Below the pieces are notes generated by a model, which worked only from the letters and a program-made list of their open reading frames with translations, ran no database searches and was not told where the DNA came from. 64,000 bases of DNA from Zygnema circumcarinatum SAG 698-1b (taxonomy: Eukaryota; Plantae; Zygnematophyceae): the NCBI GenBank assembly GCA_037447605.1, contig CM074822.1, positions 705,492 through 769,491 on the forward strand. The letters run 5' to 3'. Shown here one piece after another: positions 1-27,294 of this stretch. Position 1 is the first letter of the stretch. The number at the start of each line of letters is the position of its first letter. The position numbers and the translations under genes were made by a program.

Positions 1-493
1 ACCACACCTTGAAGCACAAACCAGTGCCAAGCTCATATCTGCTTGGTTTCGTTAACTTTGATTTACCTTCATTGAAAGAGAACTCTGGACTCACCGTTAC
101 CGACGATCATCAAAACACCGCTTCTCCCGCGGAGAAGTGCAGCAGATTATTAAGTAACACCAGTTCCTCAGTAAGCGGTCCTGAGAACTCCAAAACCTGA
201 TTGGCAGACAGCCAAGCTCAGCAAGACCATCGATTCAAAGACGTGGGATGGAACTCTCCTCTTCTACCCCCTTTCCAACTCCAACCCCCTCCCCCTCTCC
301 TCCCCGATGAAAGAAGGAGACAAAGGAATCCACTAAGTTGGATTGGAAGGAGAGCGGGAGAGGGGGAGGCGTAGGCAGATAGAGGTTGAAGGGGAGGAGT
401 GGGGGGGAGAGGGGCAGCCGGATAGTTGTGGAAGAATACGTTTTCAATGGGAGGTAAGTCGCCAAAAGACAAGGATGCCCACAGGCGGCAAGT

Positions 494-3400
494 TTAGGTT
501 GTACAATCATAATTCATAGACTCAGGAATTAGATAATTGACGAGTCTGAAACTCACCACAGCACTGCCGATTGTGCCCAAGTTTACAGTTCCATCCTCAA
601 CTTGCACAGCTGTGTCAATGCCCTGATCGATAGGACCCCTTCCAAGCCCGCTGAGGACGTCATGATATCTTCCATCCCTCAAGGGTACTTTGATCGATTC
701 GTTCTGCACAATTAGCGTTAAAAAGATGAGCCAAAACTCTGACAGCAGCCAACAAAGTCTAGAGATGTGTAATCGACATGTCTGCGAGTCTTCGGTTTAC
801 GAAACGTATAATGCTACACAAGCTCTGGATGAAATGAAGGGCTGAGAGACAAAGCAGAAGCATTTCACATTCCAAAAACATGATATAAATGTGCAGAGTG
901 CATAACGGACGAAACATGAAATTCAAAGAAGCTTGAGAGGAGAGGGACTATTGAATAAGAGACGTGAATCAAAAGAAAACATGAAGGACGGGTTATTTCA
1001 GTCAAGTGAAAGGCGAGTTCAGCACTGTGCAATTCTAAATTACCGAGAACAATTGAATAAAGCAGGAAAAGGTTCCCTGCCTTGCCTCTGTAGCGAGCAG
1101 AGGTATCCATTGGACAACAGATTTGCCCGAGTGGGGGTAAGCTATACGCGATGGTGAAGAAACCTTGAGGTTGTGGAGTGAATTGCATAGACCATACTAG
1201 CCTCTAGACAGGCAATTAAAATCCATTTAGGCCAATAAACATCTTAAATGCCACTTACCCGCTCTCCCAAGACATTGAAAATGCCAAGTAAACTGTTGGA
1301 GTTGTCGGGTGCTAACCAAGCTGCTATGATGCATGTATCACCATACAGGATGGAAAATGATCCTTCTCTGACCGCTGGGGCCTTCTTTAACGAGGTGACT
1401 GCCTTAAGGAATGGCTGCACAATAAGGTGAAAAACAAAAGCACGGGTAGAGGAGAGCGCAAAGCTGTTACTTAAATAGAAAACTTAGTTGCCATCATCAC
1501 AGCGATTCAATTCTAGACGGAAAAAACGGCGCAATTTCGCAGTGACCTAAGAAGCGCGGGTTATCACAAGAGTTTTAAAGTGGCTCACCTCCAACGAACG
1601 ACTCCCCCAAAGTACAGGATCGTCTTCAAAGAGCTCTGGCGGATTTTGAGCCTCAGATTCCTATTCATGCCTATAACAAGTAGTGAGAAGAGAAGAACTT
1701 ATACGAATGTCCTCACAGCTTACTTGCGAACTACCAATACTGAATGAGGAGTTCATAAGGTATTCCATGCAAAGGTGAAGACTAGTGTGGTGTGAAAGAT
1801 AAAGTTCATTTCATGGGAAATGTAGCTGATACCTGGCCACCAAAGATGAGGAATGCTCCTCTATTGAAAGCAGCGAAAGCAGTCCAAGCCATAGCAACTT
1901 CCCTGCTTGGAGCTCTTTTCATGATGCGCATCTGGGATTAGCGAAAACAAACTCAAACGATAAGATTAGTGCTTGAAAAAGCATGACCGATTACGGGCAG
2001 ATTCTTTCACCAAATTTGTGGGCAAAAAATCTGAAACAGATTTATGGATCCAAAAAAGTATGAAATGGAGGTCACAACTTCATAAACGAATGCAGATTAA
2101 TTACATGCAGAGGCTACTTTAATGGTTCTGTTATTCACCTGGTCGTGATTTTCGACAAAACGAAGTTTGACGGCATTGTGCGGCAGATAGGCCACCTGCA
2201 AGCACTCGGCTCTCCCATTTTGGCGAACTCAACAAATCGAGAACCCTCATCCATTTGTATTTCAGTGTTACATACTGCCTATTGTGAAGTCATAGGTTGC
2301 TTCAACTAAAAGACTACCCAAGGAGGGCGTCGACTCCAACCAAAAGTATAGTCATTTAGGGGTCACCTCCAAGTGAGGATAAAGCTCTCGGAAACAGAGC
2401 TTGAAAATGGAAAACACAAAACATCTACTAACAAACGTTCCCAGTGCTGCAACATTTTGCATATCTTGAAGGTACTAGAGGTCTCCTCCATCAGTATCGG
2501 TTAGTTCACCATTAAACATGCGGTGCGATTCCTTACAACAATACTGACACCTTTCACGATCCTCGTTATTGCCCTCATTTCTTTCCCTACTACCCGTTTA
2601 GCTACTTCCCTCCTTTTTTTAACCAGAATGCAATCGCATGGTTCAAAATGCTCGCTCAAGTTATGCCTAAATAAAAAGAAACGTTTCAAAATCCAATACA
2701 CATGAAGCACAGGTATCCTGTTCGAACTCACCTGAAATTGTAGCATCTCCAAATAGCGAGAAAGACTCTCTTGGCCAGCCACCACAGCACACCACCTGAA
2801 CCAGAGGTCATAGTCATACACAATATCAAAGACGCGGTACAGTTCTGCATCACACAATCCCACCCCACCCTGTCCCCAGAAGAAACTGGGGCTTAAATGC
2901 AACCTTAGACAGGATGCGAGTGCAGAGAGGGAGAGAGAAAGAGAGATGAGGGAGGGGGGGAAAGAATCAGTTTGACGTATGTATATGTCCGAGAGAGAGA
3001 GAGAGAGAGATAGCGAGAGGACAGTATCAATTCTGTGAGATCGGTATACACACATGAACTTCGGCAAATCAGGCTGGGATTGAACCGAAAGCACATTGTC
3101 TTGCGACCTTCTTGTTTTCAGAAATTCATTGATTTACCGTTACGGGGATACTGCAGGCGCATCAAAGGCAAGAGAAAAACTCGTGATTTATTTCTGAATG
3201 TTCTGACTCCAGAATCAAGGCTGATAACTTCCATGACAATTGAATCATCAAATGGATTTCGTGGTCCAAAATCTTCTTAACTGGAGTAGCGGAGCCATAC
3301 CATCCGCCGTCTCATAAGGAGAAAATTTGAATCACAAGCTTCCGCAAGCCAAAGCACGTCAGGATTAACCTGTGCCACTCTCCTCCGTGCCTCCTGCAGA

Positions 3401-5978
3401 CAAAAGAGCAGAAGTAAGAAAGATAGATAACCTATAATCAAATTTGTTTGCTCAACACGGGGGCAAGCGTTTCATAACCTTCAACAAACCCGGCTTCACG
3501 TTTTTATATGAATTAAAGAAAGCCGCTATGTCAAGAACTCGAGGATAAGACTGCATGGAATAGTATCCAGAAGGGCACGTCACAAAGTGGACTTTCCATG
3601 CCGTTCTAAAATGCGAGAACTCTCCACAAGTGGACATTTCAGATGAAATTCAAAATTGCATGAGAGATGTGTCGGGAAGGCCCAACAACAGGAAAGCCTT
3701 TCAAGATGCAGGTTGCATTGGCTGAAGGAAACGAGAAAAAACACCAGATAAACGCCATTTTCAAGGGACATAGGTACCATAAAACCGGACGGTCATAGTG
3801 CTACTGTGTGTGCCCATGATTGGCTAAGCTTGTGAAATTGTTCATGAGGTAACAGGTTATTGTAAATACCAAGTTCTTCAATAGTTGGCAAGCTAAATAG
3901 GGAACTTTCAGAAGTACAAGCTTCGTACCTCCCAGAATTCAATGGGCACAAAGGTGGCTACGTCGCAGCGAAAGCCCCGAACTCCTTTTTCTGCCCACAT
4001 GACAAGGGTGTCCATCAAGTACTCCCAAAGCCCTCGGTGCGAAAAGTTGAGATCTGCTACATCTGACCAGGGCGACGTAGGATTTCCGTTTGCATCCTGC
4101 ATTAACAATAAACTCAATGGTAGTCAAGAGTAGCAATACTGCACGTTGACGAGAGACCACCTTCGCTATATTGACACCGTTGGGAAGGTGATTAGTTGTG
4201 TAGATCTCCCATTAGGAAAATGGAAGTAAAATACTCTGAATACTCTCCAACATCGTCTCTACGTTTTCTCATTTATCATTGGTAATTCGAACTTCAGTTG
4301 TGTTGGAGAGGCATCGTCACGCAAGCGATTAAAATAAAACAAAGGAACGAACTCCAAAAAGAAACATGAGAACCTTAGATCATCTAGTCTGACATGAGGC
4401 ACCTTCCCCAATTTCACTCTCTCTGTCAAATGGCTCTTGATCGTATCCCCTCGAGGCACGAAAGCTCTACCAACGCGGAGGCAGGCAGTTTAAGCTGGTT
4501 GTCCTTCATTATTCGCACACCCACCAAATGCTGCGGTTTGGAAAAGAAGTGCTGTAGTAAGCAATGATAATTTAAAGCAAAACAAAGGTTGTGGGCGTGG
4601 CAAAGATAAAAAGACAATAATTGACAAACGCATTCATTCAACAAGGTGCAAGTGGCCTACCCTCTTGAACCATTCCGGATGCTCTCGAGCCAAAACAGAA
4701 TCGCGGGCGGTGTGATTGAAAACTATGTCGATCATTATGCGCATTCCGAGCTCCTTTGCTGCCTTCACAAGTTTGTCAAAATCTGGATGCCAGAAATACG
4801 GGCAGTTTAAGGAAATCGTATTTGGAGTGAGGTCTCCTTCATTCGGAAAAAAGAGACTAAAAGAACAACACAGACTTTGCAACAGAATTACATTTGCAGC
4901 TCCATTCCTACTCAGATTACTGTTATAACCAGGACCACCTGCCGAATGTGGAAACCTTAGTGCAAATGTTGCCGTCATACATGCTTGCATACAGCTTCTG
5001 CCTCTAAATGTTCTCAATTGCAGAAGCTGGGCTTTTTTTTTTGTTTAACAGTACGGTTTTATCTTCCTTAAGCTGACGGCCGAACTCCATTGATGGTCAA
5101 GTTTGGTTCGCTTTAAGCATTTTGCCAAGGGCGACTCTCCCAAAATAGATTCTGTACGTTCAGTTTGTGTACGTCGCGAGCAGCCATTGGACAGATTTCT
5201 TGACTAAACTGAAAAATAAACTCAACCGAAGTCATCGGAGGACAGTGGGAGACAAGCAGGTTGGCAAGGGCCTGCTAATTCGAGGATTTCTAAACACTTA
5301 TTCTATCAATCAGTAGTCACCTTCAAAGGTTCCATGTCTTTCGCTGATTCCTCGATAATCCTGGATGCAATACGGTGATCCCTGCGTTCCCTTCCGTGCT
5401 TCTTCTCCTATGGGATAGTGAGGCATCAGCCAAACAACATCGACACCAAGGCTCCTCAGCCGCGCCAAATCCTGTTCGACTTCAATAAACGTTCCAGCTG
5501 TCGAATGATTTCTCACAAACACTTCATAAAATATCAAATTGCACGCATCAACTTTCAAGTCTTTCAAAGGGACTTGAGAAGCCAGCTCCACTTTTTGTTG
5601 ACGGCTGGCAATCCCTTCAGTTGGAGCCATAGTACTCAGATTCATCTGCAACTGATTCTCTGAAACCGCCGAAGCTCTTAATCTCCTTCCAAAAAAGCAC
5701 CTGTCAGTGTGCAGAACACATCTTGGCAACCTAAAGCACTCCGCCAGGGCAACACAACTGGCCTGAAAGCGCGAGCAGGATGTTTCCAAGCTCCGGCGAT
5801 GCAAGTTCAGACTCAAATCGCATCTCTTTCCTGCTGAAACCCTCCTCTGCGCACCAAGCAGCAGCTGTCTTGGAGCACATGCTTGCCCTGCGACAGCCGA
5901 AGTCTCCGACATATTGAATTCGTCCGAGCTTTTTGCACAGTCAGTCAACAAGCGATACCATATATCAGGATTATTCAA
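494..5978 (-). CDS. GH13 alpha-amylase, bacterial/archaeal AmyA-like type, 10 exons, with an N-terminal extension resembling a plastid transit peptide
   Basis: Exons read with GT-AG ends and consistent phase: 5978-5321, 4782-4661, 4096-3929, 3393-3301, 2869-2732, 2195-2139, 1931-1833, 1660-1589, 1414-1259, 703-494. All four GH13 conserved regions are present: DIVFNH, GFRCDVA (nucleophile), WLAE (acid/base), FVENHD. The N-terminal core reads YEVFVRNHS..GTF..DL.RL..LGVD.VWLMP.YPIG...RKG..GSPY.I.DY. The start codon (5978 or a later ATG) is uncertain. Confidence 0.92.
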
Positions 5979-6145
5979 TATATATTACATTATGAGATGC
6001 AGATATTATATGCACGGTACATGACTTGTATTGCATGTACCCTCAAAAAGCTTTCCAAGCTTCCACTGAAATCCTTCCAAACCTTGCAACTGAAGGGCCT
6101 CCCAAGTCCTTCACAGGCCTCTTGGCTTCATCAGGGAAGCATTTA

Positions 6146-6251
6146 CCAATGAAGATTTGCCACATGTACAATAATGACTACGTGGCACGTCTTCTGTCCA
6201 ATGAAATCATGTCACGTGTACGCTAATGTCCACGTGGTACGTCGCCATTGG
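6146..6251. promoter_or_regulatory. Cluster of three CCAAT-N9-YCACR (ERSE-like) elements with G-boxes upstream of the amylase gene
   Basis: Matches at 6146-6164(+), 6198-6216(+) and 6233-6251(-); the last two form a convergent pair. Confidence 0.6.
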
Positions 6252-23100: not shown

Positions 23101-26100
23101 ATCCACTCTCTCTTTTTATATCTCTCTCTTTTCAAACTTTTTCTCCCTGTCGCTCGTCTCTCTCCCACTTTCTCTCTATCCTCTCTCTCTCTCTCTCTCT
23201 GTCTCTCTGTCTCACCCCTCAGAGACGTGAGACAACTTTGCGCGAATCATTTGACAGCTGGTTTATTTTGAAGTACTATGATGTGAACAAGAGCCTTGCA
23301 ATAAATCAGGGAACCACTGTCTCTTCTCTTTGAGGAGTTTATCTATTATTCTCTCCCTTTTTTTTTATTTCCCTGTTGTGCACTGTAGTCTGTCAGGAGG
23401 GTTTTGATGCACTTTTTTTTTGTCTGCAGCTCGCTTTAGCTGCTCAAGGCTACTATCCCGGAGAGGACGACTTGTTGAATGACTACTTTTCAGAGGAGAC
23501 CGAGAGTGCGGTCAAGACTTGGCAGGTGAGCTGTGCATTTCTTTGAATGTGGTGTGGATGGAGAGACATAGAATAGGGCTAGTCATCAATCACCTTACTA
23601 GTGAAATTCACTTTACTGACTGGTCACTTTACTCATGGAATCCTAAGAATTGAGAAATGTGTCGAATGATTTGAGAAATGCACTCATCAAAGAGTAGTTG
23701 CTGTTCATTTTTTCTTTTTATACCTATGGGGAAAATCAACATAGGCTTGTACCGGCTGCTGTTTTACTTCTTTGACATCTGAAGCCAAGTTTTATCCTCT
23801 CGGTCTATCCCTACCAGGCCACTATAGGCGTTCGAGAAAATGGAGTGATGTCGGCTGAGCTCCTTTCTATTCTTTATGGAGAAACGGAGGCACCTGCATT
23901 CAAGCCCGCAGCTGCAGTCAAGGTACAGCCTTTCAGAATGGATGGTTGGAACAGCAGCAAACCCTAACATTCAACCTTACCACTTCGTAACTCCAACTCA
24001 GATCTTGCCTATATGTACTTCAAACAAAAGGATTCCCTGCCAAACAGTAACATGTTTTGAGAAGAGCTGGCCTGTCATAGAGCTTGTATGTATCTGAACC
24101 TCTAATATAGGGCTAAACATGTATTTACATGCGACCACTTTGCCCAGGCTTCCACCACTGCAAGTAGGGATTCGTCGGGGCGGGCCCCACGTGCCACTAT
24201 AGAGAAGAGAGAGATTGAGAGATACCCTCGCACAGACATAGAAGCTGGCTCACAAGGAGCAAAGAGAGTGTTCCTTTTGGGGGAGAATCGATGGGAAGAG
24301 CCTGACCGTGTTGCCCTAAACAATGCGCGTTTGAATGGAACAAGTGGAAAAGCGACCCGTCAAGCAAACTGCTTTGTATGTAGAGGAGAAGGGGTCCTTG
24401 TCTGCACGGGTAAGGAACAGGCACTGCCCACTTTGGTGTGCTGAAAGTAGGCATCGCGTACAGGCTCGTGGTGAGGGTGAGGGTGAGTGGGAGGGTTTGA
24501 GAGGGGTAGAGTGAGGATGAGGGTGAGAGGGAGGGTTTGAGAGGGGTAGAGTGAGGGTGAGGGTGAGAGGGAGGGTTTGAGAGGGGTAGAGTGAGGGTGA
24601 GGGTGAGAGGGAGGGTTTGAGAGGGGTAGAGTGAGGGTGAGGGTGAGAGGGAGGGTTTGAGAGGGGTAGAGTGAGGGTGAGGGTGAGAGGGAGGGTTTGA
24701 GAGGGGTAGAGTGAGGGTGAGGGTGAGAGGGAGGGTTTGAGAGGGGTAGAGTGAGGGTGAGGGTGAGAGGGAGGGTTTGAGAGGGGTAGAGTGAGGGTGA
24801 GGGTGAGAGGGAGGGTTTGAGAGGGGTAGAGGAGGGTGAGGGTGAGAGGGAGGGTTTGAGAGGGGTAGAGGGTGAGGGTGAGAGGGAGGGTTGAGAGGGG
24901 TAGAGTGAGGGTGAGGTAGAGGGAGGGTTTGAGAGGGATAGAGTGAGGGTGAGGGTGAGAGGGAGGGTTTGAGAGGGGTAGAGTGAGGGTGAGGGTGAGA
25001 GGGAGGGTTTGAGAGGGGTAGAGTGAGGGTGAGGGTGAGAGGGAGGGTTTGAGAGGGGTAGAGTGAGGGTGAGGGTGAGAGGGAGGGTTTGAGAGGGGTA
25101 GAGTGAGGGTGAGGGTGAGAGGGAGGGTTTGAGAGGGGTAGAGTGAGGGTGAGGGTGAGAGGGAGGGTTTGAGAGGGGTAGAGTGAGGGTGAGGTTGAGA
25201 GGGAGGAGGGTGAGGGTGAGAGGGGTAGAGTGAGGGTGAGGGTGAGAGGGAGGGTTTGAGAGGGGTAGAGTGAGGGTGAGGGTGAGAGGGAGGGTTTGAG
25301 AGGGGTAGAGTGAGGGTGAGGGTGAGAGGGAGGGTTTGAGAGGGGTAGAGTGAGGGTGAGGGTGAGAGGGAGGGTTTGAGAGGGGTAGAGTGAGGGTGAG
25401 GGTGAGAGGGAGGGTTTGAGAGGGGTAGAGTGAGGGTGAGGGTGAGAGGGAGGGTTTGAGAGGGGTAGAGTGAGGGTGAGGTGGGAATTGTGTGGATTAA
25501 GAGTGAATGGGAGCGTTCTGATTATGTTCATTCGGTGCTAGCAAGTGCAGAAGAGTGATGGTTGAGCGAGAATATCCCTTGTCTACGAAGAGCTTGCAGT
25601 GTAATTGAATTGATTATGCTTCGTTCACTTTCGTCAGTGGAATTTCTGTCTCCCGCTTTCTCTCACGTTTGTTTGTGGCTGTATGAGTTACGAGCGCAGA
25701 ATGTGAAGGGACAGGCGATCTCAATGTGGAGGAGCAGGTGGGTTACTTCTTCCCTCTCTATGTCGATGTATCTTTTGCATGAAACATGTGCGGAAGGAGG
25801 GAACTTGCGTGAGTTTCCTGCTGATTTGGATCCATGAGGTTTCACGATGCTGTTTGTGTGAGCCAATTCCTCTCTGTCTCTCTCTCTCGCTCACTTTCTC
25901 TCCTTCTCTTCCCCTGTCTTTGTCACTCTCCTCTTGCTCCCTCTCTCTCTCCCTCGCTCGCCCCCTTCCCCTTCCCCTTCCCCTCTGACCTCTTCCTCCC
26001 ATCCCCCCTCTTCCTCCCTTCCTCTCTCCCCCCCCCACCCCAAAATGCCATTAGGATGTGAGTGTTGCCAGTAGGAAATGAGGAGCGACTGACCGTGACT

Positions 26101-26242
26101 GATTCTGTACTTGGTGTTGGTTGATTCCGACCTTTATGGTTGCCAGTTTTTGGATTGGGCGGGAGAGGAGCCCAAGTGCTTGTATTGCGGAGGTTCGGGC
26201 TCGACCACTTGTGACACGTGTCGCGGCTCGGGCGTGCAGTGA
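22244..26242 (+). CDS. PTAC5: Plastid transcriptionally active 5: coiled coil, peptidoglycan-binding-like domain and DnaJ-type zinc finger
   Basis: Exons 22244-23005, 23430-23525, 23818-23922, 24148-24409, 25700-25737, 26147-26242, all phase-compatible. Hallmarks: EEARWAREEQRW repeat, LGMGAEGEDV, SAVKTWQ, RVFLLGENRWEEP, C.VCRGEG.L.C.EC.GTG..NVEEQFLDW....KC.YC.G.G...CD.C.G. Confidence 0.95.
24471..25481 (+). repeat. 40-bp G-rich minisatellite, about 25 copies, in pTAC5 intron 4
   Basis: Unit GAGTGAGGGTGAGGGTGAGAGGGAGGGTTTGAGAGGGGTA. Confidence 0.95.
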
Positions 26243-26342
26243 TCAGGGCTTCAAGGCTATGGCAGAAATTGTTTTTGAGAAAAATTAAGATTTTTTTGGC
26301 GGAATAGTCTCTCTCTCTCTCCATCTCTCTCTCTCTCTCTCT

Positions 26343-26464
<122 letters not shown>

Positions 26465-27294
26465 CCACCCCATTAATAATACCTTTCATGATAGTAAAGA
26501 GCCGTGTTTTACGAAAGAGGCTAATGAAGGGGCATGAAATTCCCGACCAGTCCAACTATCTTGCACATGAGAGAGAGCGAGAGAGAGAGGGAGAGCTGCA
26601 GGGTGGAAGGGGGAGAGGTGGGGACAGGGGGAGGGGGTGGATAGGGAAAATACGGACAAGAGGGAGTGGCTCTCTGTCTGCAAAGGAAATATAGCACGAG
26701 CTGGAAATCCAGAGTTGTTGCCCGTTGTTCTTTATGGAAACCCTAAAAAATGCAGAGAGGGAGAGGTTCTATGGCGATGCTGAGAGTTTTCAGGAGCCTT
26801 AGAGCGAGCCGCCATTGAAGTTATAAGCCTCACGGGGAACCCACTCACGGTCTGCCAAGTATATATGCTCATTTGCAGGCTTGGCATGTTGGAATTGGCC
26901 AGATCAGATGTGGGTAGAATTCTGCGATTGGCCCGTTCAGAGAAATCGAAGAAATTTGGAATTCAATTGCTCGAATCTGCAATTGGTGAGCACAAAGATA
27001 TTCGATTGGACGAAATAAAATAATGATTTCTTCAATATGGAACTCAGGGAATTCAAATTGGTAAATGACATTCTGGTTAGGAAATTACTGAGACGTAAAA
27101 AGATATCATGTTTGTCCATTGAATTTCTCATTCGAAATAATCATTCATTTGAATGCTCGAAGTGGTTAGCTTTATGGCTACACAGGCCCATCTCAAAGCA
27201 CTCTGCCTCCTTCTCTCTCCCTCTCCTTCGACAAGGCAAAAGATAGAAATTACAACTAATTGAGGACTAATTGAGGACTCTTCTTTCTATTTAC

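Follow-up and report, generated by a model that had tools for sequence, protein, structure and literature searches.

An expressed, intron-rich GH13_48 amylase gene of probable old bacterial origin in the streptophyte alga Zygnema circumcarinatum

The CAZy subfamily GH13_48 was defined around two enzymes of known structure, AmyB from Thermotoga (4GKL) and the maltogenic alpha-amylase from Lactobacillus (Lactiplantibacillus) plantarum (3DHU) (Marecek, Terrapon and Janecek 2024, PMC11239784). It is a very large and overwhelmingly bacterial subfamily, in which "some algae, fungi and plants" are scattered among bacteria, and the L. plantarum and T. neapolitana enzymes attack maltooligosaccharides and dextrins at the non-reducing end, releasing maltose (PMC11239784). 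Here, we describe a multi-exon GH13 gene on the minus strand of a stretch of 64,000 nucleotides from Zygnema circumcarinatum SAG 698-1b (assembly GCA_037447605.1, contig CM074822.1, positions 705,492 to 769,491), hereafter the window, to which all positions refer. Its 576-amino-acid product is, judged by its sequence, a catalytically intact-looking member of GH13_48, the family of maltogenic or maltose-forming amylases. A preliminary description, drawn from the letters of the window, had placed a GH13 gene with several exons between 494 and 5978 and had proposed that it was acquired from bacteria and retargeted to the plastid.

In a six-frame translation of 401-6100, the minus strand showed a series of conserved GH13 blocks that starts with the ATG at 5912. 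Assembled contigs from four public runs, each belonging to a separate study, were aligned to 300-6200, and exon edges were fine-tuned to the exact splice dinucleotides; the library type of these runs is not recorded, and assembled contigs give no measure of transcript ends, strand or abundance. Spliced contigs were present in all four runs, demonstrating that the gene is expressed, and their joints were identical in each, reading CT..AC on the plus strand and hence GT..AG on the strand of the gene. The contigs thereby bore out the multi-exon gene and the splice junctions that the preliminary description had left to RNA data. Its count of ten exons and nine introns had to be revised to 11 coding exons and 10 introns, with a spliced frame open over 576 codons to a TGA at 112-110 (Table 1). 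The eleventh exon was traced from loose contig ends at 555, whose sequence is that of window 165-194. What had been taken for the last exon, ending at a stop near 497, is the form that retains intron 10; in the spliced form, exon 10 ends at 557 and is joined to 196-110, outside 494-5978. The resulting C terminus, ...GEAVF, matches end to end those of three relatives introduced below, namely the algal orthologue P0001, a Chara braunii protein and a group of Pavlova-type proteins. A donor of exon 4 lying further downstream, which a first reading had suggested, was rejected, with no contig supporting it and the RNA-supported exon 4/5 junction at 3301|2869.

Assignment to GH13_48 draws on the active site and its surroundings. 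All seven conserved sequence regions (CSRs) of the family were found in the protein, and an alignment with 60 relatives placed the GH13 residues Asp283, Glu312, Asp389, His221, Arg281 and His388 at their expected positions, in agreement with the intact catalytic triad noted earlier. The motifs first used to recognize the enzyme (YEVFVRNHS, GTF and RKG..GSPY.IQDY) are likewise present in the translation. Members of GH13_48 are distinguished by a Cys directly before the nucleophile, a CSR-V ending in L-[DN] and a CSR-VII ending in GQ (PMC11239784). The Zygnema protein carries Cys282 before Asp283 in GFRCD, Leu254-Asn255 at the end of VADLN, and Gly422-Gln423. The end of CSR-V varies among its relatives, being L-D in P0001, L-S in Chara and often L-K, L-V or L-R in close bacterial relatives. 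Two AmyB residues of the binding site for the non-reducing end, His103 and Asp135 (PMC11239784), align with His221 and Asp250. Markers of the Haloarcula-type subfamily GH13_49 are absent: CSR-II ends in T-F instead of [WY]-[GA], and Ala, not Asp, precedes the Glu of LWLAE. The family is thus GH13_48, and not the "AmyA-type" group to which the protein had initially been likened.

Searches of structure and protein databases were conducted with exon 1 or with P0001 and not with the full window protein. P0001, retrieved by a HMMER pass with exon 1 over 1.84 billion representative proteins, is the 606-amino-acid product of a transcript-like algal contig (run SRR8128905) and matches the window protein at 74.5% identity from residue 91 through to the C terminus. 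In a search of Protein Data Bank (PDB) sequences, exon 1 alone strongly matched only two solved structures, 3DHU (3e-22) and 4GKL, and individual exon pieces gave weak, short matches to PF00128 as their only Pfam hits. With P0001, 3DHU (E value 8e-101) and 4GKL (3e-74) stood more than 50 orders of magnitude ahead of the next best match, GlgE (about 1e-19), and a fold search concurred. The AlphaFold model of P0001, with a predicted local distance difference test score (pLDDT) above 90 at residues 150-606 and below 50 at residues 1-149, shows a (beta/alpha)8 barrel with domain B and a C-terminal beta domain. It superposed on 3DHU with a template modeling (TM) score of 0.94 and a root-mean-square deviation of 1.9 A, and on 4GKL with a TM score of 0.90. 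There was no GH13_6 structure, the subfamily of the plant AMY enzymes, among the 55 PDB sequences matching P0001 at E <= 1e-10. No plant AMY was among the best 120 matches of either search of a larger protein collection (see below). These results uphold the earlier view that the enzyme is of bacterial type and is not an AMY1-3, isoamylase, pullulanase or branching enzyme.

The larger collection, of 5.8 billion proteins, was searched with P0001 and with a profile built from the five nearest proteins; it does not contain the window protein itself. Among the listed matches, a handful of clusters outscored a long plateau of bacterial proteins of about 446 amino acids, which are 46-58% identical to P0001 and whose named members all belong to Chloroflexota/Anaerolineae, except for one of Obscuribacterales. 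In the profile search, only four clusters plus the protein P0296 scored above the bacterial matches, unannotated algal and bryophyte genomes not being searched at the DNA level. One of the proteins above the plateau is CBR_g55382 of Chara braunii (P0151), with 51% identity to the window protein; its UniProt entry reads [quoted passage not shown]. Another group (P0153/P0006) belongs to a 90% cluster in which one member is a EukProt entry under the name Diacronema (Pavlova) lutheri. The Pavlova-type gene is intronless and lies, in two metagenomic contigs, tail to tail with and 14 bp from a rhomboid gene, which resembles only eukaryotic RHBDD1-type clusters; this conserved neighborhood points to a compact eukaryotic genome. 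P0296 is encoded next to a sulfotransferase gene on a contig of 65% GC (JGI 3300016647), and its gene has an 80-nt GT..AG intron at contig positions 131-210, after ...VVYE, with the upstream frame open to the contig edge. The intron marks P0296 as eukaryotic too. The gene is therefore not private to the Zygnema genome but is shared by a small eukaryotic clade comprising two further streptophyte algae, Pavlova-type sequences and one GC-rich eukaryote. Neither search yielded a land-plant orthologue or a sequence from a named chlorophyte among its listed matches. Within the contents of these databases, the distribution among eukaryotes is patchy. The earlier remark that angiosperms are not known to have such an activity has no bearing on an alga.

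Maximum-likelihood trees were computed quickly for 72 and for 61 sequences, the latter set then carefully under a site-heterogeneous model, with consistent results. In the careful tree, the window protein, P0001 and the Chara protein grouped with 100/97 support, as is consistent with a streptophyte host, and these three streptophyte sequences, the Pavlova-type trio and P0296 formed a seven-member eukaryotic clade with 100/100 support. This clade was nested in a Chloroflexota-rich bacterial group, which was set off from more distant GH13_48 proteins at 99 in the Shimodaira-Hasegawa-like approximate likelihood ratio test (SH-aLRT). The phylogeny, named beforehand as a check on the proposed transfer, placed the protein among bacterial relatives. 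Since the clade nests within bacteria and the subfamily is overwhelmingly bacterial, we favor a transfer in the direction from bacteria to eukaryotes. As nearly all of the nearest named bacterial relatives are Chloroflexota/Anaerolineae, we infer a donor from this phylum. A scan of bacterial and archaeal genomes with clade-specific peptide patterns was of no help in naming the donor, because it returned only loci of Mollicutes, Bacillota and Bacteroidota (24-46% identity), which are more distant than the metagenomic Chloroflexota matches.

An old age for the transfer, likewise proposed at the outset, is supported by the introns. The Zygnema protein and the annotated CBR_g55382 were both aligned to the 29-kb locus of Chara, and exon boundaries were compared via the pairwise alignment. 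All 10 intron positions of the Zygnema gene coincide with Chara exon boundaries, six of them on both sides, and introns 3 to 6 on one side only, because two exons that they flank are absent from the Chara model. The missing exons are those with the catalytic Glu and the Asp of the NHD motif. In the stretch of BFEA01000069.1 that holds the locus, runs of N at 23665-23875 and 25972-27080 lie exactly where these exons are expected, so their absence is an assembly artefact and not decay. The Chara gene has an additional intron within the part that corresponds to exon 1, and the 350-amino-acid Gly/Arg-rich N terminus of CBR_g55382 is probably spurious. The shared introns imply that the common ancestor of Chara and Zygnema already carried the gene in its nucleus, with many introns. 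Should the alga be closer to land plants than Chara is, bracketing would imply that the gene was present in land-plant ancestors and has since been lost, a view to be taken with the lack of many algal and bryophyte genomes in the databases. Compared with P0001, the catalytic core had proportions of nonsynonymous and synonymous differences (pN and pS) of 0.14 and 0.72, the latter near saturation, a nonsynonymous distance (dN) of 0.16 and a dN/dS ratio of roughly 0.06, or at most 0.2 by raw proportions. This low ratio indicates strong purifying selection.

Bacterial relatives start about 10 residues before NLIFYEV, and the window protein has about 116 residues more. The preliminary description had noted an extension of about 110 residues with the motif RRLRASA, and it is indeed present. 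Contigs run through this region unspliced as far as 6031-6076. Ahead of the homology, the frame is open over 140 codons, which occurred in only 9 of 20,000 shuffles, and the other two frames contain six and seven stops; the leader is thus almost certainly coding. It has a net charge of +8 with few acidic residues, is rich in Arg, Ala, Leu and Ser (16% Ser plus Thr and 12% Ala), and reaches a maximal hydropathy of 1.3 over 15 residues, without the hydrophobic core of a signal peptide. The leader of P0001 (119 residues, 29% Ser plus Thr, the same net charge) is disordered in the model and only 19% identical. An extension that is coding, absent from bacterial homologues and not conserved in sequence fits the usual signature of an organellar transit peptide. 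The leader is most likely organellar and probably serves as a plastid transit peptide.

Taken as a whole, we consider it probable that the locus is an expressed nuclear GH13_48 gene of old bacterial origin, whose product is likely an exo-acting, maltose-forming enzyme with a probable plastid leader. A bacterial gene would have been captured by a eukaryote before Chara and Zygnema diverged and would then have gained introns and a leader. By analogy with the family, hydrolysis would proceed by retaining double displacement, with Asp283 as nucleophile, Glu312 as acid/base and Asp389 as stabilizer of the transition state. We infer substrate and product from the two structurally known relatives: because both act in this way, the enzyme is most likely exo-acting and forms maltose from soluble alpha-1,4-glucans. 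A plastid location would put it where maltodextrins arise from starch, so that it might act on the products of starch breakdown. Several points weigh against this reading. Its specificity is not secure at identities of about 47-50% to the characterized enzymes, and PersiAmy1, a member of the same subfamily, reportedly cuts pullulan (PMC11239784). The case for the donor phylum depends on few named bacterial matches and on a bacterial group with an unresolved base. Haptophytes store beta-glucan and are not known to store starch. As the Pavlova-type sister group consists of haptophytes, a starch-specific role would not be general for the clade. The composition of the leader would fit a mitochondrial as well as a plastid address, and its seven Cys in 85 residues are odd for a transit peptide. 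Met95, together with four short ATGs in the 5' untranslated region (UTR) (at 6036, 6022, 5990 and 5961, with reading frames of 1-21 codons), could yield a leaderless cytosolic form. Finally, several contig-supported splice forms are unproductive.

The features of the leader raise the possibility, which we regard as appreciable but clearly less probable than the reading above, that the same enzyme works elsewhere. In this case, the leader would not target the plastid, or translation would mostly start at Met95, and the enzyme would reside in the cytosol or mitochondrion, acting, for example, on maltodextrins or heteroglycans of the cytosol. The start context of Met95 (A-3/G+4) is optimal and the residue is retained as Met121 in P0001, all four upstream ATGs precede the first start codon, and both the richness in Cys and a composition unable to tell organelles apart leave room for such an arrangement. 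The Pavlova-type relatives, moreover, have a merely basic extension that does not resemble a transit peptide. Yet an open frame of 140 codons ahead of the homology is very improbable by chance, and two orthologues have kept leaders alike in length and composition despite full divergence of their sequences, as is typical of targeting peptides. It is also conceivable that the gene might yield two products, one with the leader from Met1 for the plastid and one without it from Met95 for the cytosol.

A different history, which we think unlikely, is that the gene did not pass from bacteria into streptophytes as such but was an ancient algal gene, present early in Archaeplastida or arriving with the plastid and lost many times, or was obtained from another eukaryote. 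The Pavlova-type sequences beside a eukaryote-type rhomboid gene and the GC-rich eukaryotic gene with its own intron would suit this history. So would Obscuribacterales, a relative of cyanobacteria, as the one such named member of the bacterial sister group, and a GH13_48 sequence of the red alga Rhodosorus in the covered part of Table S1 of PMC11239784. It is countered by the small size of the eukaryotic clade, nested with support of 99-100 in an overwhelmingly bacterial subfamily, and by the lack of any named chlorophyte or land-plant sequence among the listed matches, though P0296 could be from a chlorophyte. This history departs from the transfer that we favor only in which eukaryote first received the gene; haptophytes may have gained it from a green or another alga or on their own.

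In addition to the canonical transcript, contigs from several runs and studies revealed alternative forms, which contig depth cannot rank. A 60-nt cassette exon in intron 2 is in frame, and its longer form (4403-4530, 128 nt) brings a stop codon; neither was conserved in any relative examined. An alternative acceptor of exon 5 at 2795, found in two runs, causes a frameshift. Retained introns also occur among contigs of several runs, including unspliced contigs of lower depth across 300-584 that retain intron 10. One might therefore suspect a decaying or merely regulatory locus, whose aberrant splicing yields no working enzyme. Such a locus is very improbable, given that each of the four runs contains the canonical form, whose frame and catalytic residues are all intact, and given the strong purifying selection on the core relative to P0001. 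Bacterial contamination of the assembly, despite about 50-54% identity to bacterial proteins, can be dismissed as the preliminary description had done, since ten spliceosomal introns in spliced, RNA-derived contigs already refute it, their positions are shared with Chara, the gene matches its surroundings in GC content (about 50% across the 64-kb window) and eukaryotic transposon DNA adjoins it.

Upstream of the gene, ACGT cores are packed more densely in a stretch containing two G-boxes than anywhere else in the window, at 5 per 100 bp compared with an average of 0.27 over the 64 kb. This stretch lies 100-170 bp upstream of most transcript-contig ends and may contain candidate bZIP/bHLH elements of the light or abscisic acid (ABA) type. 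Within the gene, intron 4 contains a (GA)n microsatellite at about 2930-3010, and intron 10 contains low-complexity purine/pyrimidine-rich tracts at about 250-450.

Table 1. Positions of the exons and other features of the GH13_48 gene in the window
Feature	Position	Strand	Remarks
Candidate promoter element	6180-6242		two CACGTG G-boxes at 6213 and 6231; pattern count only
5' UTR	6076-5913	-	contig ends at 6031, 6049 and 6076; one contig continues beyond 6200
Exon 1	5912-5321	-	ATG 5912-5910; residues 1-197; phase-1 donor
Exon 1, content		-	leader residues 1-116 (5912-5565); Met95 (5630-5628); start of catalytic barrel YEVFVRNHS; GVDVVWLMP = CSR-VI
Exon 2	4782-4661	-	residues 198-238; CSR-I DIVFNH, His221 (4714-4712)
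Alternative cassette exon in intron 2	4530-4471	-	60 nt; adds 20 residues in frame after Arg238
Exon 3	4096-3929	-	residues 239-294; WSD (Asp250); CSR-V VADLN; CSR-II GFRCD, Cys282, putative nucleophile Asp283 (3964-3962)
Exon 4	3393-3301	-	residues 295-325; CSR-III LWLAE, putative acid/base Glu312 (3342-3340)
Exon 5	2869-2732	-	residues 326-371
Exon 6	2195-2139	-	residues 372-390; CSR-IV FVENHD, His388, Asp389 (2144-2142)
Exon 7	1931-1833	-	residues 391-423; CSR-VII ends Gly422-Gln423
Exon 8	1660-1589	-	residues 424-447
Exon 9	1414-1259	-	residues 448-499; domain C begins
Exon 10	703-557	-	residues 500-548; donor GT 556-555
Intron 10	556-197	-	if retained, stop near 497
Exon 11, coding part	196-110	-	residues 549-576, ...GEAVF; TGA 112-110; tail conserved in P0001, Chara and the Pavlova-type group
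3' UTR	109-1	-	runs past the start of the window; loose contig ends of 255 letters

Many gains of bacterial genes are already known in streptophyte algae, and to these the present gene is a solid but not surprising addition, as a dated case anchored by introns. We found no description of a streptophyte GH13_48 clade in the literature, and a text search of the whole supplement of PMC11239784 did not find "braunii". Table S1 of that paper contains 304 GH13_48 sequences, and the roughly 200 rows covered here include Rhodosorus marinus, a red alga, and Ricinus communis. Since the Ricinus entry (EEF24336.1, row 58) stands between rows of Sphingomonas and Novosphingobium, it looks, within the covered part of the table, like bacterial contamination. 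Apart from flagging this probable contaminant among "plant" GH13_48 sequences, our analysis corrects two annotations, the gene model first proposed for the Zygnema locus and the Chara model damaged by assembly gaps.

Accounts of starch breakdown in land plants usually name beta-amylases, debranching enzymes, DPE1/2 and GH13_6 alpha-amylases. Our results indicate that a maltogenic-type alpha-amylase with bacterial ancestry also occurs in algal relatives of land plants. It has been under strong purifying selection, has persisted since before the lineages of Zygnema and Chara separated and did not turn up in land plants within the databases searched. This provides a concrete enzyme for asking how the catabolism of transitory starch was rewired at the origin of land plants. 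As a speculation that we hold with considerable doubt, the streptophyte clade may mark a plastid exo-acting, maltose-forming route of maltodextrin breakdown, present in the common ancestor of Chara, Zygnema and, by bracketing, land plants, and dropped by the latter in favor of beta-amylases.

Compared with known systems, the Zygnema protein is closest to the Lactiplantibacillus plantarum maltogenic alpha-amylase 3DHU, the best solved relative of P0001 in both sequence and fold. They share the layout of three domains, A, B and C, and the GxRCD, WLAE, ENHD and GQ motifs. 3DHU is, however, a bacterial enzyme of 449 amino acids, encoded without introns and lacking a leader, at an identity of only about 40-50%, whereas the algal protein, the activity of which is predicted from sequence, lacks three residues before WSD and has insertions of its own in domain C. 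Thermotoga neapolitana AmyB (4GKL), the second-best solved relative, agrees in the two binding-site residues mentioned above but comes from a thermophilic bacterium, is more distant (about 33% identity) and is missing the residues that separate the acid/base motif from the FD..YDYD motif. The Chara gene shares 10 intron positions and the C-terminal tail with the Zygnema gene at the 51% identity given above, but spans 29 kb, has the extra intron and is represented by a model lacking the exons with the catalytic Glu and Asp. Plant AMY3 and the other AMYs of GH13_6 have in common with it the GH13 superfamily and the mechanism, and AMY3 has an N-terminal plastid-targeting extension (PMC6426938). 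They differ in subfamily and CSR signatures, are endo-acting and are of separate origin. An alpha-amylase of Basidiomycetes was gained from bacteria and then acquired many introns (PMC3584928), the same pattern as observed here, in a different GH13 subfamily, recipient lineage and cellular setting.

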